In this document: positions 7,480 to 64,000 of the stretch, one piece after another
How the letters are laid out: each line of letters opens with the position of its first letter
Position numbering within the stretch: the first letter of the stretch is position 1
The notes under the pieces: generated by a model
What the model was told of the DNA's origin: nothing
What the model saw: the letters and a program-made list of their open reading frames with translations, nothing else
Databases searched by the model: none
Position numbers and translations under genes: made by a program
Assembly (NCBI GenBank): GCA_002269645.1
Contig: NIVC01000010.1
Coordinates: 1,178,001-1,242,000 of the forward strand
Source of the DNA: Macrostomum lignano
Lineage: Eukaryota
Direction: 5' to 3'
DNA: 64,000 bases

Positions 7480-9435
7480 ATGAATCATCTCAACTTTCGA
7501 AGCGTGTTTCAGTGGCAATTGGACTCATCTTATTCAACTCAAACGGTCCAAATTCAAAATCAATCCCAGCGACAAGCCGTAGACATCAGCGATGTTGAGC
7601 TCACTAGCAATGCGGTCATGGAAACAGCAGATTTTAATAGAGCTCAATCAACAGACAATACAATATCAAACCCAAGTGTTAAAAATTCATTAGCTGTTGC
7701 ACAAAAAGCCATAGCTGACACAGAAATGGCCAAGCAGCGAATGCTCATAGCAGCTCAGCATCGAGTTTCAACATACTTTGGTACACCTGACGCGCGACAA
7801 TTGGTACAAACAGGTAAGAGCAAGGTACTGCGGTACTACAACAACAGCACACCTGGTGGCAGAGCGTCCTCCGTGCCGCAGACTCTGGACTTCCGCAATC
7901 AGCGATGGGACACGAGTGGAATGCCGGCCTCGATTCCACAACACCTGTGGGACATGAGACGAGAGGAGAACAGGTGGCAGTCCTTCCACCTGCCAGATGC
8001 CAGCTTCACAGCGGCTCACCTGGTGTCAGTGACGGATCTGGCTGCTGACGGATTCTTCTACCTGCAGGAGTCGGACAGAGTAAAGTGTGCATTCTGCAAG
8101 GGTGTGCTCAAGGACTGGGAGGCGGGCGAGCAGGTCCGAGAGGCTCACAGACGCCACTTCTCCACCTGTCCGTTCGTGTTGTTCGTCGAGGTCGGCAACG
8201 TGCCTCGAGACCACAGAGAGCCGGAAGGAGTCTCGAGGTCAGCAAAGCTGGTAGAGGCAGTGCAATGCTGTGATCAGACTGCAGATGATGATGCAGCAGT
8301 GATGGTGAACGGAGACTGGAGCATGAAGCTGGTCGCTGAGCTACCACCGATGGAGTTCGCTGGACTGAACGAGTGGGCGCTGGCGACACGCGAAACTCGT
8401 GCATCGAATGCAGAATGCGTTGTGGAGGAGCTGGTCGCAGTCGACATGATAAAGCGTCCTCAGCTTCCAGTGTCGAGCGAGGTAGGGAGATCTGCGTGCT
8501 CCGAGAGAGCTCTCACGAACCTGTCCGCTCTGCAGCACAGTGTCGAGAGTGATCCATCGAGTGTGACTGCCAAACACGCACAGTTCGAGACCTACCAAGC
8601 GAGGTCGCAGTCTCTGCACTCGGCTCTCGTTCAGCAGCCAGTGTACTTGCTTGCAAAGGCGGGCTTCTTCTACTCGGAAGCCGAGAGAGCGACCTGCTGC
8701 TTCAGCTGCGGACTCTGCATGAGCGAGTGGAGCTGCGACGATGATGTGTGGGTTGAGCACGCCAGGTGGTCACCTCGGTGTCCTCACGTGTTGTTGGAGC
8801 GAGGCAGCGACTTTGTACAGACAGTGCACCGACTGTCGCCTCCCGTGCAGCACCCGACTTGTGGCGCCTCTGCTCAGCGTCACACTGCATTGGTACAGAC
8901 GGACTCAACTGCATCAGCTGGTGCTGCGACTGTCGACGGGTCCGCAGTCCGCAGCAGTCGCGCAGACGAGGCTCTCGCAGTCACACCTGGAGTCGAGTTC
9001 AGAGTCGAGGCCAGAGACATCAAGGCGAGAGCCGACCTGCCCGTTGTGAGACTGCTCACTCAGCTCGGATTCTCCGCTCTGCAAGTGAGACTGTTTACAG
9101 AGCTGCATCTCAGACAGCGAGGCGATGACTTTGCCACATCGGAGCTGTTCCTCGACTTCATGCTCACCGAGAGTCGCCGCATGCGCAAGCAGTCGCAGGA
9201 CCCGGAGGCGTTCTTCGAGAGCAGGATGTCTCAGATTCGAGAGTCTCTGAACCAACAGCCGAGACCCCGAGACACAACCGACTGGAAGACGTGCAAGGTG
9301 TGCATGGACAAGGAGGTGAACATCATGCTGCTGGACTGTGGTCACGTGGCCTGCTGCTCAGTGTGCGCCAAGTCGCTGAAGACGTGTCCCATCTGCAGAG
9401 CCTTCATTCGTGGCTCAGTGTTTATTAAGATGTAA
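7480..9435 (+). CDS. IAP family protein copy 2, 651 aa (110-aa leader + BIR1, BIR2, UBA-like, RING)
   Basis: Intact single-exon ORF with two CX2CX16HX6C BIR motifs (LAADGFFY..CAFC; LAKAGFFY..CFSC) and a C3HC4 RING. Confidence 0.95.
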   Translation: MNHLNFRSVFQWQLDSSYSTQTVQIQNQSQRQAVDISDVELTSNAVMETADFNRAQSTDNTISNPSVKNSLAVAQKAIADTEMAKQRMLIAAQHRVSTYFGTPDARQLVQTGKSKVLRYYNNSTPGGRASSVPQTLDFRNQRWDTSGMPASIPQHLWDMRREENRWQSFHLPDASFTAAHLVSVTDLAADGFFYLQESDRVKCAFCKGVLKDWEAGEQVREAHRRHFSTCPFVLFVEVGNVPRDHREPEGVSRSAKLVEAVQCCDQTADDDAAVMVNGDWSMKLVAELPPMEFAGLNEWALATRETRASNAECVVEELVAVDMIKRPQLPVSSEVGRSACSERALTNLSALQHSVESDPSSVTAKHAQFETYQARSQSLHSALVQQPVYLLAKAGFFYSEAERATCCFSCGLCMSEWSCDDDVWVEHARWSPRCPHVLLERGSDFVQTVHRLSPPVQHPTCGASAQRHTALVQTDSTASAGAATVDGSAVRSSRADEALAVTPGVEFRVEARDIKARADLPVVRLLTQLGFSALQVRLFTELHLRQRGDDFATSELFLDFMLTESRRMRKQSQDPEAFFESRMSQIRESLNQQPRPRDTTDWKTCKVCMDKEVNIMLLDCGHVACCSVCAKSLKTCPICRAFIRGSVFIKM

Positions 9436-11817
9436 TTTGCTTAAACATTAACTTAGTTTTCGTTTTAAACATAATATAATTTAGCAGTGTCTGTAATTTT
9501 TCTTTCGGGTATTGACCCAAAATTATTGACCCCACCTGTGCCTTCATGAATTTATAATCTATTTAGAAATTTTCTTCCTTTTTTATTCTTCATTCTTTAT
9601 TTTCCTCGCTTGTTGCCTTCTAAAATAAATTTAATTCGCTGTACTTATCTTTCATCAAAAAATGAATCATAGGAAATAATATTGCTGTTCTTTGCTTTAA
9701 TTCTGTTTCTACGCTGTTATTACCGCGTGCGCATGCTTCGTACCCCATATCCTTGATTTTTATCGTACTCGTACTCGTACATTTTCAATGGTTATTTGCT
9801 TGTGAACGGGAACCAAAATAAATAGATTCTCCTTAATTGTAGCTTTTAACGCGCGTGTAATGCAAGCTAAAAGCTACTGTTGTAAGAAAGAAGACCCCAA
9901 TTTCATATGTATTGCAGTCTTCTACATTTTTTGTTGAGATTAAAGATGATAGCTACGGAATAGCTATCATATAGCGAATACTCTAACTGAGAATTACAGA
10001 ATCGGGTTTAATATCCTACATGTACATAAGCATGGCTTGTTATAAATCAGATTGAGCTATAAATGTATGTGAAACTGGAAGTTTCAGGCTGTACATTAAT
10101 GGAAAAATCGAGCAGAATAGTACCTGAATAAAACCGGAATAGTAAGAGATTGTCGTCAGAAATGCTTTGTGAAAATCTTTCTGACATTGTTTTCGAGTAA
10201 CCCGGAGATAAAAACCTGGACATATACGGTGAACCTGCACTTGTCTAGATGATAATGCTTTGGAGAAGGTCGGTCGCAAGGGTTCAGAGAGAACACATGA
10301 TTGAGAAAAAAGAATCCATACCTGTATAAAAAAACTTCTCGGATTAAAAATAAAAAGGGGATAAATAACATATTATCACGAGTAAGATGAGGCGCCGCGG
10401 CCTATATATCGCATAATTGGATGGCATCAAAATTCCATGAATTTTGTTAGTAATGTAAACAAAAGTTAAATTTGTCATGCAGATTAGGCAAGACTCCAGC
10501 TGTTGAATTTTCCAGGCTCAGTGGAGCGTTCGTGTTATCAAAGCTGGGCTATTCAAGATTCTTCTGGATATACAAGTACGAGCGTAAGTAGAATGATGGA
10601 TATAAATTTTTATACACCATGTATTTTATGTACATGTAGACCTAGCGAAGGGGTAGATTGAAATTAACCGATGTTGATCCTTGACTAATAAGACAATACT
10701 CTAGATAGAAAATACTAAAACAATACTACGAGCGTAAAATGAAGCTTTTGATCGTTTTCACTAAACTTAGTCTTTGTTGAACGGTTGAGTATATAGATGT
10801 ACGACGTATTCGATATTTATTCTCGTATTTCGCAGAAGGAACCAGTTCCCTAAGCATACATGTACATGTATACCTGACCAAGTCTTACATGTAATTGGAT
10901 TTCGCAAATCTCATTCTGTAGCATCTGAAAGTGAGCCACCGCTACATTGTAAGCAGTAAATTATTTTGGAGAAAATTAAAGTTACCATCATTTCGTCACA
11001 AGCAGCTCATCGTGTAGCCGATAGCAAATGAAAATAATAATGCTTTCAAATAAATTGTTTTACTTGAGTATCAAGCGTATTTTCTTCTTCATTTAGTTCA
11101 AACTCCACGGTGGTCATCAATTGTTAGCATAGAAGCAATGATTTAGATGTAAATTGCAAGTAAATGTACATGTACATGTATATAGCCATACTGCTTATAT
11201 AAAGTGGTAGGAATTGAAGCTACGTCGACAAAAAAGTTACTCTTTGTATTTTGTGTTTCTCCCAGTAATAATGCGCGCCTGCTTCTGTTTTTTGTTTTTT
11301 TCTGCCATGGGTTCTTCCCGTACAGCAATCTGACGTCGTGCATGGTGACGTCTGGCCGTCGATGTCAGGTTGTACTTTCACATTACGCCAACGTCGGATT
11401 GCTGTACGAGCTTGTCTGTCCCACCCTGTAGTCCCGCGTTGTTAGAAATGACAAGCCAAGGCGAGCAATTGCTATGAAACGAGAATCACGACAGTTCTGA
11501 GCCAATGCTCAGTGCGAAACTATTTATTATCAACGATAAAGCACAAACCCGCGACAACCCCCCAACCCAGGACTAAAACTCACCGCACTGCACATCAGAG
11601 CACGATGACAATAATAATTTGACGCGTACACTCACACAGAACAAAAGTACAAGCACCAGTGGAATGAGCAATCAGAGTAAACAGTGCGAAGCCCCGCCCA
11701 AGCCCAACACGCGTCATCCTGCACTGGTTTCACTCGGTGGGTCCTCATTTATCACCCGGGCGTACCCCCCCCCCCTTTCGTATCCGGTGGCTCATGAAAG
11801 CCTACATCTTCTTCTAA

Positions 11818-12630
11818 TCTAAATATACTAAATCTCTAAGGTTTGTTTGTTTGTTTGTATGTTTGTCCATAACGCTCTAGAGATTGCAATTCTTCACCGA
11901 TTTTGATCGTGTTTTCGCCAAAAGATTCAAAATCTATCTAAATATACTAAATCTCTAATATTTGTATGCTTGCTTGCTTGTCCATAACGCTCTAGAGACT
12001 GCAATTCTTCACCGATTTTGATCGCGTTTTCACCAAAAGATTCAAAATTGTCTGGAAAGAAGACAGTTAAAATTTCTTGTATCTGCTTTAATGCTAAAGG
12101 GATTAAATATTCGAAAAACTGTTTTAAATGGCCTTTTTCAATGCAAATTTTATCAGCGAGAAACTTCACTGCCAATTTTAATTGATTGCGCCAGAGCGAA
12201 CTGATAAGAAAACTCACTGGGCCCCACTTAAAGGGGGGCAATAAAAAATTATTCTGGCTGCTGGCAGCCAGCTCTAATTAGCTAGTCTAAATATACTAAA
12301 TCTCTAAGGTTTGTATGTTTGAATGTCCATAACGCTCTAGAGACTGCAATTCTTCACCGATTTTGATCGCGTCTTCGCCAAAAGATTCAAAATTGTCTGG
12401 AAAGAAGACGGTTAAAATTTCTTGTATCTGCTTCAATGCTAAAGGGATTAAATATTCGAAAAACAGTTTTAAATGGCCTTTTTCAATGCAAATTTTATCA
12501 GCCAGAAACTTCACTGCCAATTTTAATTGATTGCGCCAGAGCCAACTGATAAGAAAACTCACTCGGCCCCACTTAAAGGGGGGGCAATAAAAATTATTCT
12601 GGATGCTGGCAGCCAGCTCTAATTAGCTAG
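11818..12630 (+). mobile_element. Non-autonomous Helitron type A: one 5' stub plus two ~345-bp units head to tail
   Basis: 5' A|TCTAAATATACTAAATC starts at 11818, 11937, 12286. 3' ends have hairpin GCTGGC-A-GCCAGC then CTAG|T at 12285 and 12630. Confidence 0.8.
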
Positions 12631-13164
12631 TCTATCATCACAATATACTAAATCTCTAAAAGTCTAAGATCTGTCTGTCTGTCTGACCGGTATTCCAGTC
12701 CACAGCCTGAATGCCTGAACCGATTTTTTTCAAACTTGCTTTATTCAATTGCAAATTCTTGTGAGATTGTGTAGGTGTAATTGCATTGAAAAATTCGAAT
12801 GAGAAGTTGGTTAAATATTCGAAAAACGAGTTTTTTTAATGCTTTCAATGGGAGGCTAGAAAAGGTCAAAATCTCACTGACTGAATTTCAATTCCAATTA
12901 AGATTGCGCCACAACTATTCTCTGTTCACTGTGTACGCCTCAATACTGGCTGCAATAAGGGAGAGGAAAATAATGCTCAGTGGCTGCGTGTGTACATTCT
13001 GACCCTGGCTGACTGGCGGACTGCATAGACAATTGCTATTAATAGATTTCACTCAACTGTGCATTGGATCTGCCTGCATACAACCTGTGCACACTGAGCA
13101 GCCTATCACTGCTATGTATTTGACTGCAGTGCCGAAGCATATATGGCTGATTTTTGCGCCCTCC

Positions 13165-13250
13165 GATCAGTAGGCGGAATAGCCACATTGTAGGCACTAG
13201 GACTAGGTTTAGGCTAGGCAATAAGGTCCAAGGTTCGAGTCCGCCTCCCC
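13165..13250 (+). other. tRNA-like (Pol III A/B-box) segment inside Helitron; further copies at ~17368-17452, ~20513-20600, ~38212-38300
   Basis: TAGCC(G/A)CAgTG A-box-like motif and GGTTCGAGTCC B-box; no convincing cloverleaf. Confidence 0.5.
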
Positions 13251-14486
13251 AGTGGATAATTAAAATTAAATAAATTCATTCATAAGTAGCTTCTGCCTCG
13301 ACTATTTTGAACATTTTTTGATTAATTGTAATTAAATTTTTTATTAATTAAATTTTTTATTAATTACAATAATTTATTTTTGCTACTTGCACAAGCCACT
13401 AAGCAAATTTGATTTGATTTGTAAAATCTTAAGATCCCATTAACTGTTATTATCTAGGTTTATAGAAGTAAATATTACTAAACTGCAGGGGATTAAATTA
13501 CTAAACTGCAGATGATGCTGCTAAACTGTATTGCTAAATGCTGAGTGGTGCAAAAGATTGCCGATATGTATCGAAAATCGATCAGTGAGCCATAAAATGC
13601 TGAGCTAATTTCTACATTGTTGAAAGGATCATTGCAGTAGACGATGCTGCTAAACTGCTGAGGTATTGCTAAATGCTGAGTTGCGCAAGACTGCCAATAT
13701 GTATCGAAAATTGATTAGTGCGCCGTCGTAAATGCTGAGCAAATTTTTAAATCATTAAAAAGATCATTGCAGTTTGCTGAGAATACTGAGGGGCCAGCTG
13801 AGAGAACTGCAGACTGCTGAAGGGATAAATGAGAATTATTAAGGAAACACTTGCTGACTGCAAATGAATTGACTGCAGACTACTGAGGGGAACTGCAGAT
13901 TGTTGAAGGGATCATTGCAGACTGCAAAGGGGACAAACTGCAAACTGCTGACGTTAGTTAGTTTCTCGAGACTTATGAGCGTATAAGCTGCAAACTGCCG
14001 AGGGGATAGCTGCAGACTGCTAGGATAATAATGGCAGACTTCTGAGGAGGATATCTAACTGTGAATAATTGTAGCTTGCAGAAGGGACAATTCTGGGTCC
14101 CTGAGGGATAAATGAATAATAATAATAAAAGTTGTAGAGTGCAAATGAGTTGTACGACTGCAGTCTATTTTGCGGAATTAGAAGGGATAATTTCAGGTTG
14201 TTGTGGGGATAACTGCCAATTTCTGGGGAGGGTTTAACTTTAAACTTCTGAGGCGATAATAGTAGTCACCTTTTAGCAGTTTGGGAGTGGTGCTAATCTG
14301 GGGAGCGGTGCTAATCTAAGAGAGTGGGGCTAATATAAAGGAGTAGGGAGGGGTTAATCTGGGGGATTGGGGCTAATTTAGAGGAAGTAGCGGTGCGAAT
14401 TTTTGCGGAGTGGTGCAAATCTGGAGAAGTAGTGCTAATCTGGGAAGGTGAAACTATCTGGGAAGCGGCTGTAATCTGTGGAGCGG

Positions 14487-14990
14487 TGCTAATCTAGGCT
14501 GAATGCTAATCTGGGCTGAGTGCTAATCTAGGCTGAGTGCTAATCTGGGCTGAGTGCTAATCTGGGCTGAGTGCTAATCTGGGCTGAGTGCTAATCTGGG
14601 CTGAGTGCTAATCTAGGCTGAGTGCTAATCTAGGCTGAGTGCTAATCTAGGCTGAGCGCTAATCTGGGCTGAGTGCTAATCTGGGCTGAGTGCTAATCTG
14701 GGCTGAGTGCTAATCTGGGCTGAGTGCTAATCTGGGCTGAGTGCTAATCTAGGCTGAGTGCTAATCTAGGCTGAGTGCTAATCTGGGCTGAGTGCTAATC
14801 TGGGCTGAGTGCTAATCTGGGCTGAGTGCTAATCTGGGCTGAGTGCTAATCTGGGCTGAGTGCTAATCTAGGCTGAGTGCTAATCTAGGCTGAGTGCTAA
14901 TCTGGGCGCAGTGCTAATCTGGGCGTAGTGCTAATCTGGGCGTAGTGCTAATCTGGGGGAAGTGGGGCTAATCTGGGGGTGTAGGGCTAA
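14487..14990 (+). repeat. 17-bp minisatellite (GCTAATCTGGGCTGAGT)n
   Basis: Directly visible tandem array; A/G variant at one position. Confidence 0.95.
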
Positions 14991-16059
14991 TCTGGTGAGG
15001 ATTTGAAAATAACGAATAATCATAAAAGAACTATAAATGAATTGACATTGCAAAGTTTCAAACATTAAGAAATGTAACTTTTTAGAACTTTTTAGTCTCA
15101 GTAAATTTGGTGTACAACTGCTTAGAGATTTGCTACTGCAGAACTGCGCGGAGATTAGTGAGATTTGCTCAGCGACTGTGCAAAACTGCTTACAGACAAG
15201 CGCTAAACTGCTAAGAAGCCACCCGGAGGGGGGCTAAATGGCTAGTATGTATCGAAAATTGATTAGTGCGCCGTCGTAAATGCTGAGCAAAATTTTAAAT
15301 CATTGAAAAGATCATTGCAGTTTGCTGAGAATACTGAGGGGCCAGCTGAGAGAACTGCAGACTGCTGAAGGGATAAATGAGAATTATTAAGGAAACACTT
15401 GCTGACTGCAAATGAATTGACTGCAGACTACTGAGGGGAACTGCAGATTGTTGAATGGATCATTGCAGACTGCAAAGGGGACAAACTGCAAACTGCTGAC
15501 GTTAGTTAGTTTCTCGAGACTTATGAGCGTATAAGCTGCAAACTGCCGAGGGGATAGCTGCAGACTGCTAGGATAATAATGGCAGACTTCTGAGGAGGAT
15601 ATCTAACTGTGAATAATTGTGGCTTGCAGAAGGGACAATTCTGGGTCCCTGAGGGATAAATGAATAATAATAATAAAAGTTGTAGAGTGCAAATGAGTTG
15701 TATGACTGCAGTCTGTTTTGCGGAATTAGAAGGGATAATTTCAGGGTGTTGTGGGGATAACTGCCAATTTCTGGGGAGGGTTTAACTTTAAACTTCTGAG
15801 GCGATAATAGTAGTTACCTTCTAGCAGTTTGGGAGTGGTGCTAATCTGGGGAGCGGTGCTAATCTAAGAGAGTGGGGCTAATATAAAGGAGTGGGGGGGC
15901 TAATCTAGGGGATTGGGGCTAATTTGGAGGAGGTAGCGGTGCGAATTTTTGCGGAGTGGTGCTAATTTGGAGGAGGTAGCGGTGCGAATTTTTGCGGAGT
16001 GGTGCTAATCTGGGAAGGGGTGAAACTATCTGGGAAGCGGCGGTAACCTGTGGAGCGGT

Positions 16060-16500
16060 GCTAATCTAGGCTGAGTGCTAATCTGGGCTGAGTACTAATC
16101 TAGGCTGAGTGCTAATCTGGGCTGAGTACTAATCTAGGCTGAGTGCTAATCTGGGCTGAGTGCTAATCTGGGCTGAGTGCTAATCTGGGCTGAGTGCTAA
16201 TCTGGGCTGAGTGCTAATCTGGGCTGAGTGCTAATCTGGGCTGAGTGCTAATCTGGGCTGAGTGCTAATCTGGGCTGAGTGCTAATCTGGGCTGAATGCT
16301 AATCTGGGCTGAGTGCTAATCTGGGCTGAGTGCTAATCTGGGCTGAGTGCTAATCTGGGCTGAGTGCTAAGCTGGGCGTAGTGCTAATCTGGGGGAAGTG
16401 GGGCTAATCTGGGGGTGTGCGGCTAATATGGGGGGAGTAGTGCTAATCTGGGGGAAGTGGGGCTAATCTGGGGGTGTAGGGCTAATGTGGGAGAATAGTG
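16060..16500 (+). repeat. 17-bp minisatellite (GCTAATCTGGGCTGAGT)n
   Basis: Directly visible tandem array. Confidence 0.95.
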
Positions 16501-16857
16501 GTAATCTGATGAGGATTTGAAAATAACGAATAATCATAAAAGAACTAAAAATGAATTGACATTGCAAAGTTTCAAACATTAAGAAATGTAACTTTTTAGA
16601 ACTTTTTAGTCTCAGTAAATTTGGTGTACAACTGCTTAGATATTTGCTACTGCAGAACTGCCCGGAGATTAGTGAGATTTGCTCAGCGACTGTGCAAAAC
16701 TGCTTATAGACAAGCGCTAAACTGCTAAGAAGCCACCCGGAGGGGGGCTAAATGGCTAGTCTAAATATACTAAATCTCTAATATTTGTATGCTTGCTTGT
16801 CCATAACGCTCTAGAGATTGCAATTCTTCACCGATTTTGATCGCGTTTTCGCCAAAA

Positions 16858-19246
16858 TCATCACAATATACTAAATCTCTAAGATCTGTCTGTCTGACCG
16901 GTATTCCAGTCCACAGCCTGAATGCCTGAACCGATTTTTTTCAAACTTGCTTTATTCAATTGCAAATTCTTGTGAGATTGTGTGCGTGTAATTGCATTGA
17001 AAAATTCGAATGAGAAGTTGGTTAAATATTCGAAAAACGAGTTTTTTTAATGCTTTCAATGGGAGGCTAGAAAAGGTCAAAATCTCACTGACTGAATTTC
17101 AATTCCAATTAAGATTGCGCCACAACTATTCTCTGTTCACTGTGTACGCCTCAATACTGGCTGCAATAAGGGAGAGGAAAATAATGCTCAGTGGCGGCGT
17201 GTGTACATTCTGACCCTGGCTGACTGCATAGACAATTGCTATTTATAGATTTCACTCAACTGTGCATTGGCTCTGCCTGCATACAACCTGTGCACACTGA
17301 GCAGCCTATCACTGCTGTGTATTTGACTGCTGGGCCGAAGCATATATGGCTGATTTTTGCGCCCCCCGATCAGTAGGCGGAATAGCCGCAGTGTAGGCAC
17401 TAGGACTAGGTTTAGGCTAGGCATAAGGTCCAAGGTTCGAGTCCGCCTCCCCAGTGGATAATTAAAATTAAATAAATTCATTCATTAGTAGCTTCTGCCT
17501 CGACTATTTTGAACATTATTTGATTAATTCTAATTGAAATTTTTTTTATTAATTACAATAATTTACTTTTGCTACTCGCACAAGCCACTAAGCAAATTTG
17601 ATTTGTAAAATCCTAAGATCCCATTAATTGTTATTATCTAGGTCTATAGAAGTAGATTTTACTAAACTGCAGGGGATTAAATTACTAAACTGCAGATGAT
17701 GCTGCTAAACTGCTGAGGTATTGCTAAATGATGAGTTGCGCAAGACTGCCAATATGTATCGAAAATTGATTAGTGCGCCGTCGTAAATGCTGAGCAAAAT
17801 TTTAAATCATTGAAAAGATCATTGCAGTTTGCTGAGAATACTGAGGGGCCAGCTGAGAGAACTGCAGACTGCTGAAGGGATAAATGAGAATTATTAAGGA
17901 AACACTTGCTGACTGCAAATGAATTGACTGCAGACTACTGAGGGGAACTGCAGATTGTTGAAGGGATCATTGCAGACTGCAAAGGGGACAAACTGCAAAC
18001 TGCTGACGTTAGTTAGTTTCTCGAGACTTATGAGCGTATAAGCTGCAAACTGCCGAGGGGATAGCTGCAGACTGCTAGGATAATAATGGCAGACTTCTGA
18101 GGAGGATATCTAACTGTGAATAATTGTGGCTTGCAGAAGGGACAATTCTGGGTCCCTGAGGGATAAATGAATAATAATAATAAAAGTTGTAGAGTGCAAA
18201 TGAGTTGTATGACTGCAGTCTGTTTTGCGGAATTAGAAGGGATAATTTCAGGGTGTTGTGGGGATAACTGCCAATTTCTGGGGAGGGTTTAACTTTAAAC
18301 TTCTGAGGCGATAATAGTAGTCACCTTTTAGCAGTTTGGGAGTGGTGCTAATCTAAGGGAGCGGGGCTAATATAAAGGAGTGGGGGCTAATCTGGGGGAT
18401 TGGGGCTAATCTGGAGGAAGTAGCGGTGCGAATTTTTGCGGAGTGGTGCGAATCTGGAGAAGTAGTGCTAATCTGGGAAGGTGAAACTATCTGGGAAGCG
18501 GCGGTAATCTGTGGAGCGGTGCTAATCTAGGCTGAGTGCTAATCTAGGCTGAGTGCTAATCTGGGCTGAGTGCTAATCTGGGCTGAGTGCTAATCTAGGC
18601 TGAGTGCTTATCTAGGCTGAGTGCTTATCTGGACTGAGTGCTAATCTAGGTTGATTGCTAATCTGGGCTGAGTGCTAATCTAGGCTGATTGCTAATCTGG
18701 GCTGAGTGCTAATCTAGGCTGAGTGCTAATCTGGGCTGTGTGCTAATCTGGGCTGAGTGCTAATCTAGGCTGAGTGCTAATCTGGGCTGAGTGCTAATCT
18801 AGGCTGAGTGCTAATCTGGGCTGAGTGCTAATCTGGGCTGAGTGCTAATCTGGGCTGAGTGCTAATCTGGGCTGAGTGCTAATCTGGGCTGAGTGCTAAT
18901 CTGGGCTGAGTGCTAATCTGGGCGTAGTGCTAATCTGGGGGAAGTGGGGCTAATCTGGGGGTGTAGGGCTAATGTGGGAGAATAGTGCTAATCTGGTGAG
19001 GATTTGAAAATAACGAATAATCATAAACGAACTATAAATGAATTGACATTGCAAAGTTTCAAACATTAGGAAATGTAACTTTTTAGAACTTTTTAGTCTC
19101 AGTAAATTTGGTGTACAACTGCTTAGAGATTTGCTACTGCAGAACTGCCCGGAGATTAGTGAGATTTGCTCAGCGACTGTGCAAAACTGCTTATAGACAA
19201 GCGCTAAACTGCTAAGAAGCCACCCGGAGGGGGGCTAAATGGCTAG
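16858..19246 (+). mobile_element. Non-autonomous Helitron type B copy 2, inserted at an A|T site after a type A 5' stub (16760-16857)
   Basis: A|TCATCACAATATAC start, GGCTAG|T end; near-identical to 12631-15245. Confidence 0.8.
18520..18995 (+). repeat. 17-bp minisatellite (GCTAATCTGGGCTGAGT)n
   Basis: Directly visible tandem array. Confidence 0.95.
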
Positions 19247-19997
19247 TCTAATCTAAATATACTAAATCTCTAATATTTGTATGCTTGCTTGTCCATAACG
19301 CTCTAGAGATCGCAATTCTCGACCGATTTTGATCGCGTTTTCGCCAAAAGATTTGTAATCAGCCTGGGATTGTATGGTTAAAATTTCTTGTATCTGCTTC
19401 AATGCTTAAGGGATTAAATATTCGAAAAACTGTTTTAAATGGCCTTTTTCAATGCAAATTTTATCAGCCAGAAACTTCACAGTCAATTTTAATTGATTGC
19501 GCCAGAGCCAACTGATAAGAAAACTCACTGGGCCCCACCTAAAGGGGGGGGCAATAAAAATTATTCTGGATGCTGGCAGCCAGCTCTAATTAGCTAGTCT
19601 AAATCTATCTAAATATACTAAATCTCTAATATCTTCTATCTATCTTCTAAATCTAAATATACTAAATCTCTAAGGTTTGTTTGTATGTTTGTCCATAACG
19701 CTCTAGAGACTGCAATTCTTTACCGATTTTGATCGCGTTTTCGCCAAAAGATTCGTAATCAGCCTGGGATTGTATGGTTAAAATTTCTTGTATCTGCTTC
19801 AATGCTAAAGGGATTAAATATTCGAAAAACAGTTTTAAATGGGCGAATTCAATGCAAATTTTATCAGCGAGAAACTTCACAGTCAATCTTAATTGATTGC
19901 GCCAGAGCCAACTGATAAGAAAACTCACTGGACCCACTTAAAGGGTGGGGGCAATAAAAATTATTCTGGATGCTGGCAGCCAGCTCTAATTAGCTAG
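19247..19997 (+). mobile_element. Two Helitron type A units separated by 5'-end stubs
   Basis: CTAG|T ends at 19597 and 19997, each preceded by the GCTGGCAGCCAGC hairpin. Confidence 0.8.
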
Positions 19998-21799: not shown

Positions 21800-22255
21800 C
21801 AGTGCTGGTGAATCATTGCTAAACTGCTGGTGAAGCATTGCTAAAATGCTGGTGAATCATAGCTAATGCAAACTGCTGGTGAAGCATTGCAATACTGCTG
21901 GTGAACCATTGCTGAAATGCTGGTGAACCATTGCTGAAATGCTGGTGAACCATTGCTGAAATGCTGGTGAACCATTGCTGAAATGCTGGTGAATCATAGC
22001 TAATGCAAACTGCTGGTGAAGCATTGTTGAAATGCTGGTAAAGCATTGCTGAACGCTGGTAAACCATTGCTGAAATGCTGGTGAAGCATTGCTAAACTGC
22101 TGGAGAACAATTGCTGAAATGCTGGTGAACCATTGCTGAATGCTGGTGAAGCATTGCTAAACTGCTGGTGAAGCATTGCTAAACTGCTGGTGAAGCATTG
22201 CTAAACTGCTGGTGAACCATTGCTGAAATGCTGGTGAACCATTGCTAAACTGCAG
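21800..22255 (+). repeat. ~21-bp minisatellite (TGCTGGTGAACCATTGCTGAAA-like); shorter copy at 40640-40760
   Basis: Visible tandem array. Confidence 0.9.
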
Positions 22256-24347: not shown

Positions 24348-24434
24348 TCTAAATCTAAATATACTAAATCTCTAAGGTTTGTTTCTAAATATACTAAATC
24401 TCTAATATCTTCTATCTTCTAAATCTATCTTCTA

Positions 24435-48469: not shown

Positions 48470-48960
48470 TACAAGTATAACTGTAGCCCAATTAGTCAGC
48501 CATAAAATCACGGGTACAATTGTTGCTGTACCCCAATTAGTCAGTCATCAAATCACAGGTACAATTGTTGCTGTACCCCAATTAGTCAGTCATCAAATCA
48601 CAGGTACAATTGTTGCTGTACCCCAATTAGTCAGCCGTCAAATCACAGGTACAATTGTTGCTGTACCCCAATTAGTCAGCCGTCAAATCACAGGTACAAT
48701 TGTTGCTGTACCCTAATTAGTCAGCCATCAAATCACAGGTACAATTGTTGCCGTACCCCAATTAGTCAGCCGTCAAATCACAGGTACAATTGTTGCTGTA
48801 CCCTAAATAGTCAGCCGTCAAATCACACGTACAAGTAACTGTACCCCAATTAGTAGGCCATAAAATCACAAATACAAGTAACTATACCCCAATTAGTCAG
48901 CCATAAAATCGCAGGTAAAATTGACAGTCTAGACCCAAGTATTCAGCCATTATATCACAG
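48470..48960 (+). repeat. 45-bp tandem repeat (CCAATTAGTCAGCCATCAAATCACAGGTACAATTGTTGCTGTACC-like), ~10 units
   Basis: Visible array, degenerate at the edges. Confidence 0.9.
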
Positions 48961-52249: not shown

Positions 52250-52770
52250 TGGGGGCGCCGACAAGGAGACAGAGTTGTCGACAAGGAGACGGGGGCTCCG
52301 ACAAGGAGACAGTGGCGCCGACCAAGACACAGGAGCGCCGACCAAGAGACAGTGGCGCCGAACAAAGACAGGGGCGCCGACAAGGAGACAGGGGCGCCGA
52401 GAAGGAGACAGGGGCGCCGACAAGGAGACAGGGGCGCCGACAAGGAGACAGGGGCGCCGACAAGGAGACAGGGGCGCCGACAAGGAGACAGGGGCGCCGA
52501 CAAGGAGACAGGGGCGCCGACAAGGAGACAGGGGCGCCGACAAGGAGACAGGGGCGCCGACAAGGAGAAAGAGGCGCCGAACAAAGACAGGGGCGCCGAC
52601 AAGGAGACAGGGGCGCCGACAAGGAGAAAGGGGCGCCGACAAGGAGACAGGGCTGTCGACAAGGAGACAGGGGAGATAGGGCCGCCGGCCAAGAGACAGG
52701 GGCGCCGGCCAAGAGACAGGGGCACCGGCCAAGAGACAGGGGCGTCGACCAGAGACAGGGGCGCCCGTCA
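52250..52770 (+). repeat. GC-rich 21-bp minisatellite (GGCGCCGACAAGGAGACAGGG)n
   Basis: Visible array; all frames open because the unit is a multiple of 3 with no stops. Confidence 0.95.
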
Positions 52771-53734: not shown

Positions 53735-55861
53735 TCAGTCCCGCAGAAAAAGTACACCCCGAATGAAGGCTCTGCAGATGGGGCACGTCTTCAACGACTT
53801 GGCGCACACGGAGCAGCAGGCCACATGACCACAGTCCAGCAGCATGATGTTCACCTCCTTATCCATGCACACCTTGCACGTCTTCCAGTCGGTTGTGTCT
53901 CGGGGTCTTGGCTGTTGGTTCAAAGACTCTCGAATCTGAGGCATCCTGCTCTCGAAGAACGTCTCCGGATCCTGCGACTGTTTGCGCATGCGGCGGCTCT
54001 CGTTGAGCATGAAGTCGAGGAACAGCTCCGATGTGGCAAAGTCATCGCCTCGCAGTCTGAGATGCAGCTCTGTGAACAATCTCACTTGTAGAGCGGAGAA
54101 TCCGAGTTGAGTGAGCAGTCTCACAACGGGCAGGTCGGCTCTCGCCTTGATGTCTCTGGCCTCGACTCTGAACTCGACTCCAGGAGTGACTGCGAGAGCC
54201 TCGTCTGCGCGACTGCTGCGCAATACGGACCCGTCGACAGTCGCAGCACCTGCTGATGCAGTTGATTCCGTCTGTACCAATGCAGTGTGACGCTGAGCAG
54301 AGGCGCCACAAGTCGGGTGCTGCACGGGAGGCGACAGTCGATGCACTGTCTGCACAAAGTCGCTACCTCGCTCCAACAACACGTGAGGACACCGAGGTGA
54401 CCACCTGGCGTGCTCAACCCACACATCATCGTCGCAGCTCCACTCGCTCATGCGAAGTCCGCAGCTGAAGCAGCAGGTCGCTCTCTCGGCTTCCGAGTAG
54501 AAGAAGCCCGCCTTTGCAAGCAAGTACACTGGCTGCTGAACGAGAGCCGAGTGCAGAGACTGCGACCTCGCTTGGTAGGTCTCGAACTGTGCGTGTTTGG
54601 CAGTCACACTCGATGGATCACTCTCGAGACTGTGCTGCAGAGCGGACAGGTTCGTGAGAGCTCTCTCGGAGCACGCAGATCTCGCTACTTCGCTCGACAC
54701 TGGAAGCTGAGGACGCTTCATCATGTCGACTACGACCAGCTCGTCGTCCACAACGCGTCGTGCATTCGGTCCACGAGTTTCGCGTGTCGCCAGTGCCCAC
54801 TCGTTCAGTCCAGCGAACTCCATCGGTGGTAGCTCAGCGACCAGCTTCATTCTCCAGTCTCCGTTCACCATCACTGCTGCATCATCTGCAGTCTGATCAC
54901 TGCACTGCACTGCCTCTACCAGCTTTGCTGACCTCGAGTCTCCTTCCGGCTCTCTGTGTTCTCGAGGCACGTTGCCGACCTCGACGAACAGCACGAACGG
55001 ACAGGTGGAGAAGTGGCGTCTGTGAGCCTCTCGGACCTGCTCGCCCGCCTCCCAGTCCTTGAGCACACCCTTGCAGAATGCACACTTTACTCTGTCCGAC
55101 TCCTGCAGGTAGAAGAATCCGTCAGCAGCCAGATCCGTCACTGACACCAGGTGAGCCGCTGTGAAGCTGGCATCTGGCAGGTGGAAGGACTGCCACCTGT
55201 TCTCCTCTCGTCTCATGTCCCACAGGTGTTGTGGAATCGAGGCCGGCATTCCACTCGTGTCCCATCGCTGATTGCGGAAGTCCAGAGTCTGCGGCACGGA
55301 GGACGCTCTGCCACCAGGTGTGCTGTTGTTATAGTACCGCAGTACCTTGCTCTTGCCTGTTTGATTTCGAATCGCTGCATTGAGGTGTTCATGCAATCTT
55401 CTGCTACCTTTTAGTGCGTAATCAGCTGCAATTTTTTGAAGCTCAAGTAAGACATCCGGATTTTTGTTTTTTTCAACAGCTTGTTTGGCGATGGTGTACG
55501 TTATTGTCTGCCTGAGTTCGTCAACCACTTGCAGGCTGGTTATTTCTTGGAAGAACTGAAAAATGGTTTCTCGTCTGCTCTCTGATGCGGCGTTTCTTTG
55601 ATTTGAAGTCAGATTTTGAAGCCAGCGCTCGGTGTTCAGAATGGAATTCCGTGTTCTCCATTGAGCCAGTGTAGTTGATGGCCTTCGAAAGTGTTCTGCT
55701 GCAAGAGAGGTTTATTTTGTGAGAATAATTTAATTTAAAAGCTGATCGGCAGTGGCAAAAGTTTTTTAAACGTTTCAACGAAGTAAAAATTGAATGAAAT
55801 TACCTGCGTTTCGGCGTCGATGCCTTTGCTGTCCGACGTTAGCAATTATAACAAGTGACAT
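53735..55861 (-). CDS. IAP family protein copy 4, predicted join(55861..55804, 55698..53735), 673 aa (132-aa leader)
   Basis: The track ORF starts at a GTG. An upstream ATG exon (MSLVIIANVGQQRHRRRNA G|GTAATT) splices in frame (phase 1, 105-nt intron) to acceptor CCTCTCTTGCAG|CAGAACAC. The core is intact. Confidence 0.85.
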
Positions 55862-55914: not shown

Positions 55915-57588
55915 CTGAATGTGCAACCTGGAGCTTACGCTACTGCGTACACAAGGCTAAAAATAGCTTTGAGTTTTCTCAAACTGGGTTTTTCCGGTTT
56001 ACGAATTATCAAATATAGCATCTGTTGCAATGAGGAGTGACGGTTAGTTAATTATTATGTACATGCATACATAGAAATGTTTAAGATTTAGTATATTTGG
56101 ATGGTACGTATTTATTAGTGACGCATGCATACAGTTTTAGTTTCATTCTTTTAACTCTTACATTTTTGGCAAATTATAATTTTTGGCAAATTTATATTGA
56201 GTACTGAAATATTTACTCAAAAAAATAGTCACCCACAGCTGTAACTGCCTGTCAACGAGTTACAAGCCGCTCCCAGCCACCCCTGTAAGATTGACTATTT
56301 TAAAGAAAAAAATTCACGATGCCTTTTTCAGCTTGTCTTATAGTTGGAGAACTTTTTGTTTTATGATTAGGGATAAAAATGAAAGATAATCGCAAGGGGA
56401 TGCCTAGGCTATAAGCTGGATGTGACAACACCTCCCATACCAGCTGCTAAGCCCAATTTCTCCAATTTTAAGTTACCTCACGTACAAATTTCATCACTTG
56501 CTGTTTTCTCACATTTAGCGTAAAATAGATGCGAGAGAATGAAAGGTAATCACTGGTAATGAAAGATTAGTGGAGTGTGCTTTGCTGTGCAAGTAAAAAG
56601 TGGATGAAGTGAAAATTAATATGTTTTATTTCGTATCATAATTTTCTAATTCGTTCAATAGATGCGCAAATACGTGGCTCATTGCTATTTAAAATAGAGG
56701 AAAAAATAGTAAGGGCTTGTCAAGTGTCAGCTTCGAGCGTATTAATTTTGGTTTGTTTCACTTGTTTTCCGTTCTGAGAAACCAACCCTGGACCGGCCGT
56801 TTCCGTTTCCGCCGAGACAGGTGCGCATTGCGTCCTAATGTGAATCATAATACCAAAATATATTACCTAATGTCTCTTGCATCTTGCGTTAAACCCACCG
56901 GTGTAGATGCCAATGAGGCTGGCGACGTTGATAGAAAAACAGTATTTTGTTTATCCACGTGTTTGGTTTATTTGCATATTTTTGTACCACCCGCAGGCTT
57001 CTAATCAAACCAGAATGCAGACACAGCAGAGCAGAAGCCAAGCGAATAAATAAGGTCACCAACCCTCCCCAACCCCCTCCAGCAAGACAGGTCTGGTAGA
57101 TGCCCTCGTCAGATAAAACAGGTTAACAGAACCGGTAATAACCGGCCCCGAAATTAAAGTCACTTGTATTTTGTTTAGCATATTTTATTATATCTTTAGC
57201 AGGTTAAATTTCTGCAGAATGAGTTAAAAAGCAATATACACCCCAAAACTAGTGGTCAACTTTCCTCAGATCTCAGCCCCAAATGATGCAATTCACACCA
57301 CGTCCGCAGGCTCGTATGGGCTGATTTCGCAATCAAGCTGATATGAATAAAAATAAACTGATATTAGTGTATTATCAATGATAATATTAAGAATTCATTC
57401 AATCCAATTCATTAATTCATTCAATATTCAACTGATGAAAAATTCAGTCCACCACTGAATGACCACTGGCTTCGGGGTGGAAACTTTAACATGTTGCTGA
57501 TTGTACATGTACTCTCGTAGGGGGCTTGACTGGGTGACTGCGGATCGCTCTTCCGATGTCAACCGGCGTCGCGTGGGCGACGTCAACC

Positions 57589-57976
57589 GGAAAGGCAGCC
57601 ATCAGGAAGGAGCCGGCGCCCCCGCCCTCTGATGAGCGTCTCCGTAGGGTCTACAAGCACAAAATTAACAAATGCGCTGAAAATCGTAGCACGGAGACCA
57701 CACTCGCCCAACTCAGATGTGGTCAATGCAAGAAGACGGCCTACTGGCGACAAAAAATCGGTGCTGAGGCAAAGGCGAGTTGTCAGGACTGCGGTGAGGA
57801 AGAGGATAAGGACCACTGGGTGTGGTGCGACAGGTGGCATAAGGAGAGGGCGCGTTTTGGTATTCATGGTCTGGAGGATCTGGGAGATGAAGCGAAGGTG
57901 CTAGGGTTCCTGAAGTGCACGCACCCTGAGTGGGTGCAATGAGGGAACCCGCCCAGCCGAAGACGCACACGCACAC
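57589..57976 (+). mobile_element. 5'-truncated LINE 3' end (zinc knuckle) inserted into the RTE
   Basis: LAQLRCG..CQDCGEEEDKDHWVWC; (AC)-rich tail; 9-bp TSD ACGTCAACC at 57580-57588 and 57977-57985. Confidence 0.75.
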
Positions 57977-58610
57977 ACGTCAACCAGAGAGGCGGCTCAG
58001 CGTGCTTGGCTACGCCGACAACTTCGCCCTGCTGTTCTCAAGTGTCGAGGGCGCCCAGCGACAACTGAACAAGCTAGTTGCTGTTGTGGCGAGTGTCAGC
58101 CACTTGATCAACACGCAGAAAACCGTCGTGCTCTCGTGCTCTGCGTGCCGGATGACATCGAGGCTGCGATTTTGTGCCGAAGCACTGTTGGACAGGCGGC
58201 AGAGCTTCCGCGTTGTCAGCAGTTCGTCTACCTCGGCGGTCTGGTTTCCGTCGTCCGCGAAGATTTGCCGCGTCGCCGCGGGCTTGCCTGGGCTGCCTTT
58301 CGTTCTGTGAGGGCAGTCCTGCAGTACCTGACCGCCAGAGGGCGGCGTTGTTTTAGGCGGTGATCGAGACCGTCCTGTTATACAACGCCGAGACCTGGAC
58401 GCTGACGGAGTCGATCGAGCCGCAAGTTGACGCGGCGCACGCTGGCCTGCTGCGCGCCGCCTTCAAGATCGGCTACGAGCGAGTGACCAACGCGGCTTTG
58501 TATCGCCGCGCCAGTTTATTCCGTCCAAGCGACCTGTTGCGCCGTCGGCGACTCCAGCTGGCAGGCCACATCATCCGCGCCGAGTCGCACTGCCCACAGC
58601 CGGTGCAGGA

Positions 58611-58775
58611 AATGAGAAACACCGTGCTGATGGGCGAGGACAGCCCCCCGAGACGGCCGGTAGGACGGGCCATGGGTGACTGTAATCTGCTACTCGGGTG
58701 AGTGTGGCCGGAACAATTGGCCCGAGGGTTGACCTCGAGACACAGCCCCCGCGTGAAGGGTGTATCGTTGGCATG
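58611..58775. mobile_element. 165-bp GC-rich insertion with a 14-bp target duplication
   Basis: CAGCCGGTGCAGGA at 58597-58610 and 58776-58789; the RT frame resumes (..QPVQELLL) after the second copy. Confidence 0.7.
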
Positions 58776-59461: not shown

Positions 59462-60000
59462 CAGATAACGCTGATTTGTCCGAATCCAATGCTGTTCTGT
59501 CCGAATCCAATGCTGTTCTGTCCGAATCCAGTGCAGATCTGTCCGAATCCAATGCTGTTCTGTCCGAATCCAATGCAGATCTGTCCGAATCCAGAGCTGA
59601 TCTGTCCGAATCCAATGCTGTTCTGTCCGAATCCAGTGCAGATCTGTCCGAATCCAGTGCAGATCTGTCCGAATCCAATGCAGATCTGTCCGAATCCAAT
59701 GCAGATCGGCGGCAATCGAGTAACCGAGTGCCAGCTCGAAGCCTTCCTGCGCCCCTGTATCGTCAACGGAGTCCGCTGCCCGCCGGATTGCTCGATGAGC
59801 TATGAAAATATAGCGAATTACGAGCTACATGGAGAGCACCAAGATGTTCTCCAGAGCACTCGCTGGCGCGCTGCCCATGCAGGGAATGCGACTGCGAAGA
59901 CACCTGCAAGACTTGCAACCGTCGCTGCATGTACGCCATGATGAAGGTGCTCGTTCTCGAGTACAACGTCCCGGTCAGAATTCATGTTTACGAGTCTTAA
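59462..60000 (+). pseudogene. Degenerate Cys-rich coding sequence, possibly a SINA/SIAH-like zinc-finger remnant
   Basis: GC3-rich codons in IGGNRVTECQLEAFLRPCIVNGVRCPPDC..YELHGEH, then after a -1 shift RCPCRECDCEDTCKTCNRRC..YES*. Family resemblance judged by eye only. Confidence 0.3.
59465..59705 (+). repeat. 21-bp tandem repeat (CTGTCCGAATCCAATGCAGAT / ..GCTGTT), ~11 units
   Basis: Visible array. Confidence 0.9.
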
Positions 60001-62143: not shown

Positions 62144-64000
62144 ATGCACTCGACAAGACAACAAAGTTACTTCCCTCAAGCATCCGCCGGTGTGGCAAAG
62201 AAGTTTCGAGCGGCCAACGGAACAGGCAGCTCTGTGGAAAATATTATGCATTTAATTTCCAGTCTCACACAACCTGCAAGCGGCTGCAACTTCTATGTAA
62301 CTTTAGACGACAAAACACTTCAGCGGTTGAACTCAATGGTCGATGAGGTCACAAGCTGCACTCGAGACCGACTTCCGCTAGACAACATGGAACTAATTCA
62401 GGAACACCAAAAAATGAGCTTCACAGGTGAAATGTTTCAAAAGTTGCTTCAACATGCAGCCACAGAAATTTCAAAGTTCCTGATGATGAATGTTAGACAG
62501 AATACTCAGGCTTCAGAAATGAATTTACGGGCAGCGCAACAAGGAAATAAGGCTCAAACAGGTAAGAGCAAGGTGCTGCGGTACTACAACAACAGCACAC
62601 CTGGTGGCAGAGCGTCATCCGTGCCGCAGACTCTGGACTTCCGCAATCAGCGATGGGACACGAGTGGAATGCCGGCCTCGATTCCACAACACCTGTGGGA
62701 CATGAGACGAGAGGAGAACAGGTGGCAGTACTTCCACCTGCCAGATGCCAGCTTCACAGCGGCTCACCTGGTGTCAGTGACGGATCTGGCTGCTGACGGA
62801 TTCTTCTACCTGCAGGAGTCGGACAGAGTAAAGTGTGCATTCTGCAAGGGTGTGCTCAAGGACTGGGAGGCGGGCGAGCAGGTCCGAGAGGCTCACAGAC
62901 GCCACTTCTCCACCTGTCCGTTCGTGCTGTTCGTCGAGGTCGGCAACGTGCCTCGAGAACACAGAGAGCCGGAAGGAGACTCGAGGTCAGCAAAGCTGGT
63001 AGAGGCAGTGCAGTGCAGTGATCAGACTGCAGATGATGCAGCAGTGATGGTGAACGGAGACTGGAGAATGAAGCTGGTCGCTGAGCTACCACCGATGGAG
63101 TTCGCTGGACTGAACGAGTGGGCACTGGCGACACGCGAAACTCGTGGACCGAATGCACGACGCGTTGTGGACGACGAGCTGGTCGTAGTCGACATGATGA
63201 AGCGTCCTCAGCTTCCAGTGTCGAGCGAAGTAGCGAGATCTGCGTGCTCCGAGAGAGCTCTCACGAACCTGTCTGCTCTGCAGCACAGTGTCGAGAGTGA
63301 TCCATCGAGTGTGACTGCCAAACACACACAGTTCGAGACCTACCAAGCGAGGTCGCAGTCTCTGCACTCGGCTCTCGTTCAGCAGCCAGTGTACTTGCTT
63401 GCAAAGGCGGGCTTCTTCTACTCGGAAGCAGAGAGAGCGACCTGCTGCTTCAGCTGCGGACTTTGCATGAGCGAGTGGAGCTGCGACGATGATGTGTGGG
63501 TTGAGCACGCCAGGTGGTCACCTCGGTGTCCTCACGTGTTGTTGGAGCGAGGTAGCGACTTTGTACAGGCGGTGCATCGACTGTCGCCTCCCGTGCAGCA
63601 CCCGACTTGTGGCGCCTCAGCTCAGCGTCACACTGCATTGGTACAGACGGACTCAACTGCATCAGCTGGTGTTGCGACTGTCGACGGGTCCGCAGTCCAC
63701 AGCAGTCGCGCAGACGAGGCTCTCGCAGTCACTCCTGGAGTCGAGTTCAGAGTTGAGGCCAGAGACATCAAGGCGAGAGCCGACCTGCCCGTTGTGAGAC
63801 TGCTCACTCAACTCGGATTCTCCGCTCTGCAAGTGAGACTGTTCACAGAGCTGCATCTCAGACAGCGAGGCGATGACTTTGCCACATCGGAGCTGTTCCT
63901 CGACTTCATGCTCACCGAGAGCCGCCGCATGCGCAAGCAGTCGCAGGACCCGGAGGCGTTCTTCGAGAGCAGGATGTCTCAGATTCGAGAGTCTCTGAAC
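62144..64000 (+). CDS. IAP family protein copy 5 (3'-partial; 138-aa unique leader + BIR1, BIR2, UBA-like)
   Basis: Manually translated frame is open from ATG 62144 (MHSTRQQSYFPQ..GNKAQ) into TGKSKVLRYY and on to the window end; absent from the ORF track because it has no stop in the window. Confidence 0.9.
   Translation, partial: MHSTRQQSYFPQASAGVAKKFRAANGTGSSVENIMHLISSLTQPASGCNFYVTLDDKTLQRLNSMVDEVTSCTRDRLPLDNMELIQEHQKMSFTGEMFQKLLQHAATEISKFLMMNVRQNTQASEMNLRAAQQGNKAQTGKSKVLRYYNNSTPGGRASSVPQTLDFRNQRWDTSGMPASIPQHLWDMRREENRWQYFHLPDASFTAAHLVSVTDLAADGFFYLQESDRVKCAFCKGVLKDWEAGEQVREAHRRHFSTCPFVLFVEVGNVPREHREPEGDSRSAKLVEAVQCSDQTADDAAVMVNGDWRMKLVAELPPMEFAGLNEWALATRETRGPNARRVVDDELVVVDMMKRPQLPVSSEVARSACSERALTNLSALQHSVESDPSSVTAKHTQFETYQARSQSLHSALVQQPVYLLAKAGFFYSEAERATCCFSCGLCMSEWSCDDDVWVEHARWSPRCPHVLLERGSDFVQAVHRLSPPVQHPTCGASAQRHTALVQTDSTASAGVATVDGSAVHSSRADEALAVTPGVEFRVEARDIKARADLPVVRLLTQLGFSALQVRLFTELHLRQRGDDFATSELFLDFMLTESRRMRKQSQDPEAFFESRMSQIRESLN

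Follow-up and report, generated by a model that had tools for sequence, protein, structure and literature searches.

Closest described systems

Inhibitor of apoptosis proteins (IAPs) of the cIAP1/cIAP2, XIAP and DIAP2 type combine BIR domains of the type-2 zinc fold with a UBA-like three-helix bundle and a RING that carries a CPICR..I.G.V/F tail, and the same features, the bundle by structure prediction, are found in a group of IAP genes of the flatworm Macrostomum lignano. These genes lie in a stretch of 64,000 nucleotides of contig NIVC01000010.1 (assembly GCA_002269645.1, positions 1,178,001 to 1,242,000 of the forward strand), called here the window, in which five copies, c1 to c5, were recognized from an open reading frame (ORF) listing and by BLAST. 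The best explanation of the window is that it covers a portion of an array of IAP E3-ligase genes specific to this lineage, which encode a leader followed by BIR1, BIR2, a UBA-like bundle and a RING. On this account, different leaders appear on one cassette because concerted evolution has acted on part of each gene, and not because of fusions. Compared with the cIAP1/2, XIAP and DIAP2 type, the M. lignano proteins have two BIR domains and no CARD, their UBA region is not recognized by the Pfam hidden Markov model (HMM), and they add an orphan leader of 100-140 residues and a disordered segment of 38 residues before BIR1.

Concerted evolution restricted to part of a gene is known from the coding regions of Drosophila hsp70, from primate globin and opsin genes and from the mouse Naip cluster. 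The M. lignano array resembles these systems in its near-identical and sharply bounded block, its old and diverged flanks and its mosaic tracts, and differs from them in that both limits of the block lie inside the coding sequence, with a constant body set between divergent N-termini and divergent extreme C-termini. It is a known process acting in a lineage-specific IAP array and not a new kind of system.

Regulation through the N-terminus is known from DIAP1, in which caspase cleavage exposes an N-degron. DIAP1 is a precedent for a regulatory stretch located N-terminal to BIR1, but the M. lignano leaders have no conserved DxxD site: caspase-type sites of this form occur in only four of the nine leaders considered below, and no cleavage motif is shared among them.

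The IAP expansions of bivalves (hard clam and oysters) are similar to the present array in having tandem paralogs, some of them intronless, and an enrichment of transposable elements, and their diversity has been attributed to domain shuffling, with no mention of gene conversion (PMC7831173, PMC8917759). In M. lignano, in contrast, all copies keep one domain architecture and a homogenised core, and variation is confined to the leader and the last six codons.

The gene array and its shared core

The closest named proteins are M. lignano BOX15_Mlig models, and the NCBI record of c2 describes a protein of 651 residues. Additional copies were drawn from the public Mlig_3_7 assembly (L001, L002, L003 and L005). 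Two of these loci, L005 and L002, are collinear with the window, and the array has the same order and orientation in this independent assembly, with counterparts named B1 to B5 and one extra copy, B0; B1, the counterpart of c1, carries a leader of type 8. Two further copies, A1 and A2, with related leaders (6 and 7), are found in L001, and L003 holds copy D, which has its own leader and a core that is 87.9-90.0% identical to those of the recent copies. B0 (L005 7718, minus strand) lies just left of the window start and has leader type 9; its core ORF stops before the RING, and it is probably a pseudogene or disrupted by an insertion. The features of the window are the following:

c1, 1-1151, plus strand: cut by the window start; core fragment 1-1129; tail GVVFVQM and stop, 1130-1151
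c2, 7480-9435, plus strand: IAP gene
Leader 2, 7480-7806, plus strand: 109 codons; predicted by AlphaFold2 (AF2) to be disordered at 1-65 and helical at 66-97
c2 core, 7807-9413, plus strand: 38-residue segment before the internal Met (pre-Met segment), BIR1, linker, BIR2, UBA-like bundle, and RING to ..CPICRAFIRG
c2 tail, 9414-9435, plus strand: diverged, SVFIKM and stop; akin to the tail of D, a paralog at 88% identity
c3, 44968-46926, plus strand: IAP gene
Leader 3, 44968-45297, plus strand: 110 codons; homologous to leader 2
c3 core, 45298-46904, plus strand
c3 tail, 46905-46926, plus strand: diverged, SLFFRE and stop
c4, minus strand: IAP gene ending at 53735
c4 exon 1, 55804-55861, minus strand: ATG and 19 codons (MSLVIIANVGQQRHRRRNA), ending on base 1 of a split codon
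c4 putative intron, 55699-55803, minus strand: 105 nt, GTAATT...TTGCAG; its removal preserves the frame; predicted from sequence only
Leader 4, exon-2 part, 55364-55698, minus strand: with exon 1, a leader of 131 residues
c4 core, 53757-55363, minus strand
c4 tail, 53735-53756, minus strand: VLFLRD and stop; a tail type common to B4, A1 and A2 through the stop codon
c5, starting at 62144, plus strand: IAP gene cut by the window end
Leader 5, 62144-62554, plus strand: 137 codons; orphan; long helix predicted by AF2 at 95-133, adjoining the junction
c5 core, 62555-64000, plus strand: cut by the window end

The boundary motif CAAACAGG(T/C)AAGAGCAAGG occurs exactly four times in the window, at 7807 (plus), 45298 (plus), 55363 (minus) and 62555 (plus), against a chance expectation of 0. 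The core begins with CAAACAGG at the identical nucleotide in every copy, so that the abrupt onset of near-identity at this motif, noticed in copies 2-5 in an earlier sequence-only reading of the window, is confirmed; with the Mlig_3_7 copies included, all junctions still fall at the same nucleotide, within C[AT][AG]AC[AT]GG. The core is about 1607 bp long and 95.4-98.3% identical between copies, and BLAST with the c2 region gives 96.5-97.1% identity over 7807-9413 against c3, c4, c5 and the truncated c1 (1-1129). At the 3' side, near-identity ends inside the coding sequence, about 20 nt short of the stop, in c1, c2 and c3, while in the c4-type copies similarity continues through the stop codon. 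The DNA of the last six codons differs between copies and the protein pattern is common to them, G[SV][VL]F[VIFL][QKR][MED]; judged by this pattern, the tails are homologous and just far more diverged than the core.

Pfam recognizes a BIR twice per protein (E about 1e-26) and the RING as zf-C3HC4_3 (E 4e-13), and the Cys and His columns of the BIR domains are invariant. The AF2 models of the BIR folds have predicted local distance difference test (pLDDT) values of 88-97 and match BIR3 of XIAP and cIAP1 at template modelling (TM) scores of 0.8-0.9, the cIAP1 RING aligns at 54.5 bits, and the best solved relative by sequence and fold is the cIAP1 BIR3-UBA-CARD-RING structure, 3t6p. BIR domains with their zinc-ligand Cys and His place these proteins in the IAP family, and the C-terminal C3HC4 RING with an IAP-type tail places them among the RING-type IAP E3 ligases; the Pfam scan found only two BIR domains and neither a CARD nor a third BIR, so the features of a cIAP1/2 ortholog are lacking. 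The architecture had been read as BIR-BIR-UBA-RING, of which the two BIR domains and the RING are borne out by Pfam and the UBA has to be deduced, having no match in Pfam or in a PDB sequence search. AF2 predicts a three-helix bundle at residues 511-547 (pLDDT 85-92), and this region aligns, with a common GDDF motif, with the PF21290 UBA_BIRC2-3 region of P0021 and P0017, which are other invertebrate IAPs, while the match to the UBA of cIAP1 is collinear but non-significant. The region between BIR2 and the RING is thus probably UBA-like.

Evidence for probable gene conversion

Synonymous divergence (dS) is far lower in the core than in the leader: between c2 and c3 the core has a dS of 0.051 and the leader one of about 1.0, and between A1 and A2 the values are 0.136 and 0.73, respectively. 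A 5- to 20-fold difference in dS is not explicable by selection alone, and the parts of these genes must therefore have different coalescence times. The copies are also mosaic: c4 has 97.9% identity with c5, its inverted neighbour, and only 96.2% with its own counterpart B4, and 52% of the informative site pairs fail the four-gamete test, with clustered incompatibility (PHI-like p<0.0005). Over 47 consecutive polymorphic sites, spanning about 540 bp, c4 and c5 are identical (p<0.0005), and within alignment columns 401-800 of this tract c4 and B4 show 28 differences. The two sides of the tract are:

54659-55175, minus strand: apparent conversion tract in c4, recent; identical to c5 62743-63259; B4 differs here
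62743-63259, plus strand: partner of this tract in c5

A common block is also present in c3 and in A1, a copy on another contig. Locus 2 diverges between the assemblies by 0.7% in the flank, 1.2% in the leader and 2.3% in the core, and locus 5 by 0.8%, 0% and 1.6%, respectively; the homeologous P0001 and P0045 have one difference in the leader and many in the core. P0047, the counterpart of D, has LRYY and MPASIPQHLW, as in the main family, where D has LHYC and IPASIPQQLC, and patchy conversion seems to reach the D lineage too. The features of concerted evolution, that is, a block far more similar than the adjoining homologous sequence, together with mosaic tracts and incompatibility, are therefore present, and the earlier claim of a homogenised core is strongly supported by the dS contrast, the mosaics and the core-versus-flank divergence.

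The edges of the block are informative as well. The identity of c2 and c3 extends 126 nt further upstream, to 7681, and within the leader it declines away from the junction from 96% to 91%, 76% and finally about 40%, so that leaders 2 and 3 are indeed homologous, with a similarity that fades from the core outward, as the first inspection had it. A1 and A2 show a sharp drop in leader identity about 135 nt upstream of the junction.

Ongoing interlocus gene conversion among old paralogs is the probable cause of this pattern. The copies would be old duplicates that share a block of about 1.6 kb, beginning 38 codons ahead of the conventional BIR1 start and ending about 7 codons short of the stop. 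Interlocus gene conversion or unequal recombination, still going on among tandem and inverted neighbours as well as from locus to locus, would keep this block 95-98% identical. The tracts would not include the N-terminal 100-140 codons, the last 6 codons or the untranslated regions (UTRs), which would expose the true old divergence, with DNA that can no longer be aligned; the graded decay in c2/c3 and A1/A2 would fit tracts that sometimes enter leader sequence that is still similar. The sequences themselves show the mosaic tracts, the homogenisation, the IAP domains and a coding signature in the leaders; conversion as the mechanism, common descent of all leader types and any leader function are inferred.

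Some observations weigh against conversion among old paralogs. Every copy has its 5' limit at one and the same nucleotide, with an uneroded edge (nucleotide diversity 0.026 over the first 100 nt), which counts against it because conversion limited purely by homology predicts ragged, eroding edges. The step at the boundary in GC content at third codon positions (GC3) could be a sign of chimeric origin, and the mosaic patterns in near-identical paralogs could come in part from assembly polishing. Moreover, the leader types are not demonstrably homologous: pairwise Smith-Waterman scores between them are at chance level. A motif about 20 residues from the junction, found with MAFFT and by eye (TEMAKQRMLI, SEMQKQRLLV, VEIPRLRLLI, GFSKKRIEI and GLSRQRVLH), scores z 6.3 in an anchored window test that none of 2000 shuffles equalled, in a test devised after the motif had been seen. 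In a hold-out HMM trained on leaders 2 and 8 no single leader was significant, with best matches at the expected offset in three of five, and the out-group leader of the distant paralog P0048 gave no motif signal (z -0.07).

A helix motif shared across the leader types is thus suggestive only, and the common descent of the leader region next to the junction can be regarded as somewhat favoured. Leaders 4 and 5 had been described as not alignable by eye to leaders 2 and 3 and only faintly to each other, and neither comparison gives significant similarity. Partial-gene concerted evolution as the best explanation does not depend on the common descent of the leaders, and a junction at one base, the homology of the tails and the graded loss of identity already speak against independent fusions.

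Coding status and predicted structure of the leaders

Leaders 2, 3, 4 and 5 have 109, 110, 131 and 137 codons, each one fewer than the 110, 111, 132 and 138 residues first given. Once the Mlig_3_7 loci are included, there are nine leaders in seven mutually unalignable classes. The leaders of the window contain 0 in-frame stops, their other five frames having 1-12 apiece, and the nine leaders together also contain none, while the other frames average 5.5 stops per 100 codons and the chance of having no stop is about 2e-3 per leader. The leaders are therefore diversified, in frame and stop-free, as the sequence-only reading had stated, and also AT-richer than the GC3-rich core (GC3 0.32-0.45 versus 0.67, with a step at the boundary), again in agreement with it. 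Leader 4 is stop-free and in frame, and its ATG, on the minus strand, is reached only via the 105-nt GT..AG intron.

The ratio of nonsynonymous to synonymous divergence (dN/dS) of the leaders is 0.4-0.6, and indels between counterparts are in frame, as with a 15-nt indel in B3. The leaders are probably translated, given their open frames, this dN/dS, the in-frame indels, the frame-preserving intron of c4 and the conservation of the pre-Met segment described below. In Mlig_3_7, B2 (L005 18741), the counterpart carrying leader 2, has a TCA-to-TAA nonsense codon, and in B4 (L002 9887) the ATG of exon 1 of leader 4 is CTG, the remaining frame being kept in both. Because two leaders are disabled in the other assembly in this way, constraint on the leaders appears to be weak.

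AF2 predicts disorder over most of the leader sequence and a single long helix that directly precedes the junction (66-97 of 109 residues in c2 and 95-133 of 137 in c5), and no Pfam domain is found in the leaders. When leader 5 was compared exhaustively by HMMER with 1.84 billion representative proteins, no true relative was found, the single match, P0044, being a spurious repetitive bacterial protein, and leader 5 is therefore an orphan sequence rather than a borrowed domain. A query with concatenated leaders retrieved only P0001, with poor sensitivity, as P0006 was missed.

The distant paralog P0008 (L004 5332-8292), which is 36% identical, helps to date the N-terminal extension. The 38 pre-Met residues are conserved in it as protein (p 0.0065, at a collinear position), 223 codons of open frame precede the internal Met at which its annotation begins, and its homeolog P0048 has an annotated leader of 195 residues, differing by in-frame indels. 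Because of these three features, a long N-terminal extension is, as far as the sequences indicate, an old feature of this IAP group. P0008 has its own GC3 step, from 0.17-0.37 to 0.57-0.97 (about 0.3 over the upstream ORF and exon 1, about 0.8 in exon 2), at an 819-nt intron inside BIR1, and its neighbouring gene is GC3-rich throughout. GC-biased gene conversion was considered as the cause of the GC3 step in the array and not adopted: P0008, a single-copy-like paralog, has an exon 2 that is even more GC-rich, with its own step at the intron.

Alternative explanations

The sequence-only reading had proposed a homogenised core paired with diversified N-terminal modules. Under modular fusion, a core, possibly retro-derived, would have been pasted downstream of unrelated N-terminal modules that would now give each protein a distinct localisation, stability or partner. 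Modular fusion of this kind would agree with leader types that lack significant pairwise similarity and carry no Pfam domain, with the jump in GC3 at the junction, about 0.4 before it and about 0.67 after it, and with a core that lacks the BIR1 intron kept by P0008, intronless bivalve IAPs having been read as retrocopies (PMC7831173). It would require, however, seven or more independent in-frame fusions at one nucleotide, which is implausible, and the same junction is also present in D, which has a core diverged by 11-12%. At the 3' end, a like switch from conserved to diverged falls inside clearly homologous codons, identity in c2/c3 and A1/A2 decays in a nested and graded manner, and the helix motif about 20 residues from the junction may be common to the leaders. 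The leaders are, furthermore, orphans and not domains known elsewhere, two of them are disabled in the other assembly, and no independent occurrence of a leader, as exon shuffling would leave, was found in the leader 5 and concatenated-leader searches. Modular fusion is therefore considered unlikely, with the same-nucleotide junction, the homologous tails and the graded decay speaking against the earlier proposal. Its retro component fared differently: the core is a single exon, and P0008 retains the 819-nt intron at what is the usual position in bivalve IAPs (PMC7831173), but the similarity ends at or before the stop, and no A-run, poly(A) remnant or shared 3' UTR is found. The absence of the intron thus agrees with the first suggestion and the missing hallmarks do not, and an old retro-derived origin and simple intron loss, both possible, would fit equally well.

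A different proposal leaves the leader outside the protein. The boundary CAAACAG/GTAAGAG would be a cis-splice or spliced leader (SL) trans-splice acceptor, the leader an outron, intron or 5' UTR, and translation would start at the internal Met (MPASIPQ...), giving an IAP of 508 residues. The junction does resemble a splice site; the older UniRef cluster representatives P0002, P0003 and P0005 start at KSKV, directly after CAG/GT, and the NCBI models P0004 and P0042 begin with MPASIPQ. SL trans-splicing affects about 30% of M. lignano genes (PMC8629364), and the nonsense codon in B2, the lost ATG in B4 and a leader base composition like that of non-coding DNA would also agree with an untranslated leader. 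On the other hand, the frame is kept in all nine leaders, dN/dS is below 1, indels are in frame, and P0008 conserves the protein sequence of the pre-Met segment. CAAACAG is unlike the published trans-acceptor motif [TC]TNCAG, the AUG of the SL would open an out-of-frame upstream ORF of 48 codons across the internal Met, and the NCBI models P0001, P0043 and P0048 include leaders, while the KSKV starts are explicable by a predictor trained on GC-rich codons taking the AT-rich leader as an intron. An untranslated leader is accordingly improbable. SL trans-splicing at the boundary in particular was rejected, with the misfit of the motif, the SL AUG out of frame and no SL-like sequence in the window. 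No transcript contigs for the IAP family were found among the Logan matches and none for P0002, the gene identifiers are absent from the supplements of two M. lignano papers, and a literature search found no paper on M. lignano IAPs.

The copies might also be collapsed or duplicated haplotypes instead of true paralogs, as M. lignano is a neopolyploid with a difficult assembly and three subgenomes that are 1.4-2.4% apart, a divergence of the same order as that between the cores (PMC10733133). However, the five copies lie on a single contig, each with unique flanks, leaders and tails, they occupy both strands, and the independent Mlig_3_7 assembly repeats their order and orientation. As the array is found in two independent assemblies, it is not an assembly artefact, and an origin of the copies in haplotypes is very improbable.

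Possible roles and implications

Selection could maintain the sharp boundary in a "constant effector, variable head" system, in which a homogenised BIR-BIR-UBA-RING body is joined to fast-evolving heads, each made of a disordered region and the helix near the junction, that tune stability, partner choice or tissue use; this appears unlikely at present. Such heads may act, for example, in stem-cell survival or regeneration, or in conflict with IAP antagonists or parasites. In a variant of the same idea, the splice-like CAG/GTAAG junction may permit both leader-bearing and leaderless isoforms.

Under concerted evolution, the array is a clean example of the partial-gene form of this process, with both tract limits in coding sequence and a common body joined to a wholly different N-terminus. 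For experimental work, double-stranded RNA or probes directed at the core would match every copy, and the leaders are the locus-specific handles. If the leaders are functional, they would be an entry point to a diversified control of apoptosis inhibitors in a regenerating flatworm.

Annotation errors and flanking repeats

Near-identical paralogs of this kind are also a source of annotation errors in M. lignano, including chimeras, read-through models and variable starts (KSKV, MPASIPQ or the leader ATG). The model P0038 (L005 10001-40404) joins B1 to the tail of B3 across 30 kb, and P0005 and P0046 run past the 3' boundary of the core (..CPICRAFIR) and continue in reverse-transcriptase or other, unrelated sequence.

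Several repeat blocks lie between the genes. At 11500-31350, satellite and higher-order repeats extend over about 20 kb with a GC skew that is strongly positive. This block includes arrays of the 17-mer GTGCTAATCTGGGCTGA, arrays of 22-, 23/46- and 30-mers, and units of 345-400 bp, and its collinear place in Mlig_3_7 holds only about 1.7 kb (L005 22483-24141). ORF pieces at 31031-31276 (plus), 38548-38847 (plus), 32167-32439 (minus) and 57556-58701 (plus) resemble, by eye, pieces of Tc1/mariner transposases and of the reverse transcriptase or C-terminal zinc knuckle of non-LTR retrotransposons, the last of them being located between the head-to-head c4 and c5. Tandem arrays at 43648-44314, 48458-48966, 52252-52765 and 59473-59707 (18-, 45-, 20- and 21/63-mers, respectively) are a source of long spurious ORFs, and the 45-mer array is far longer in L002 and L005.

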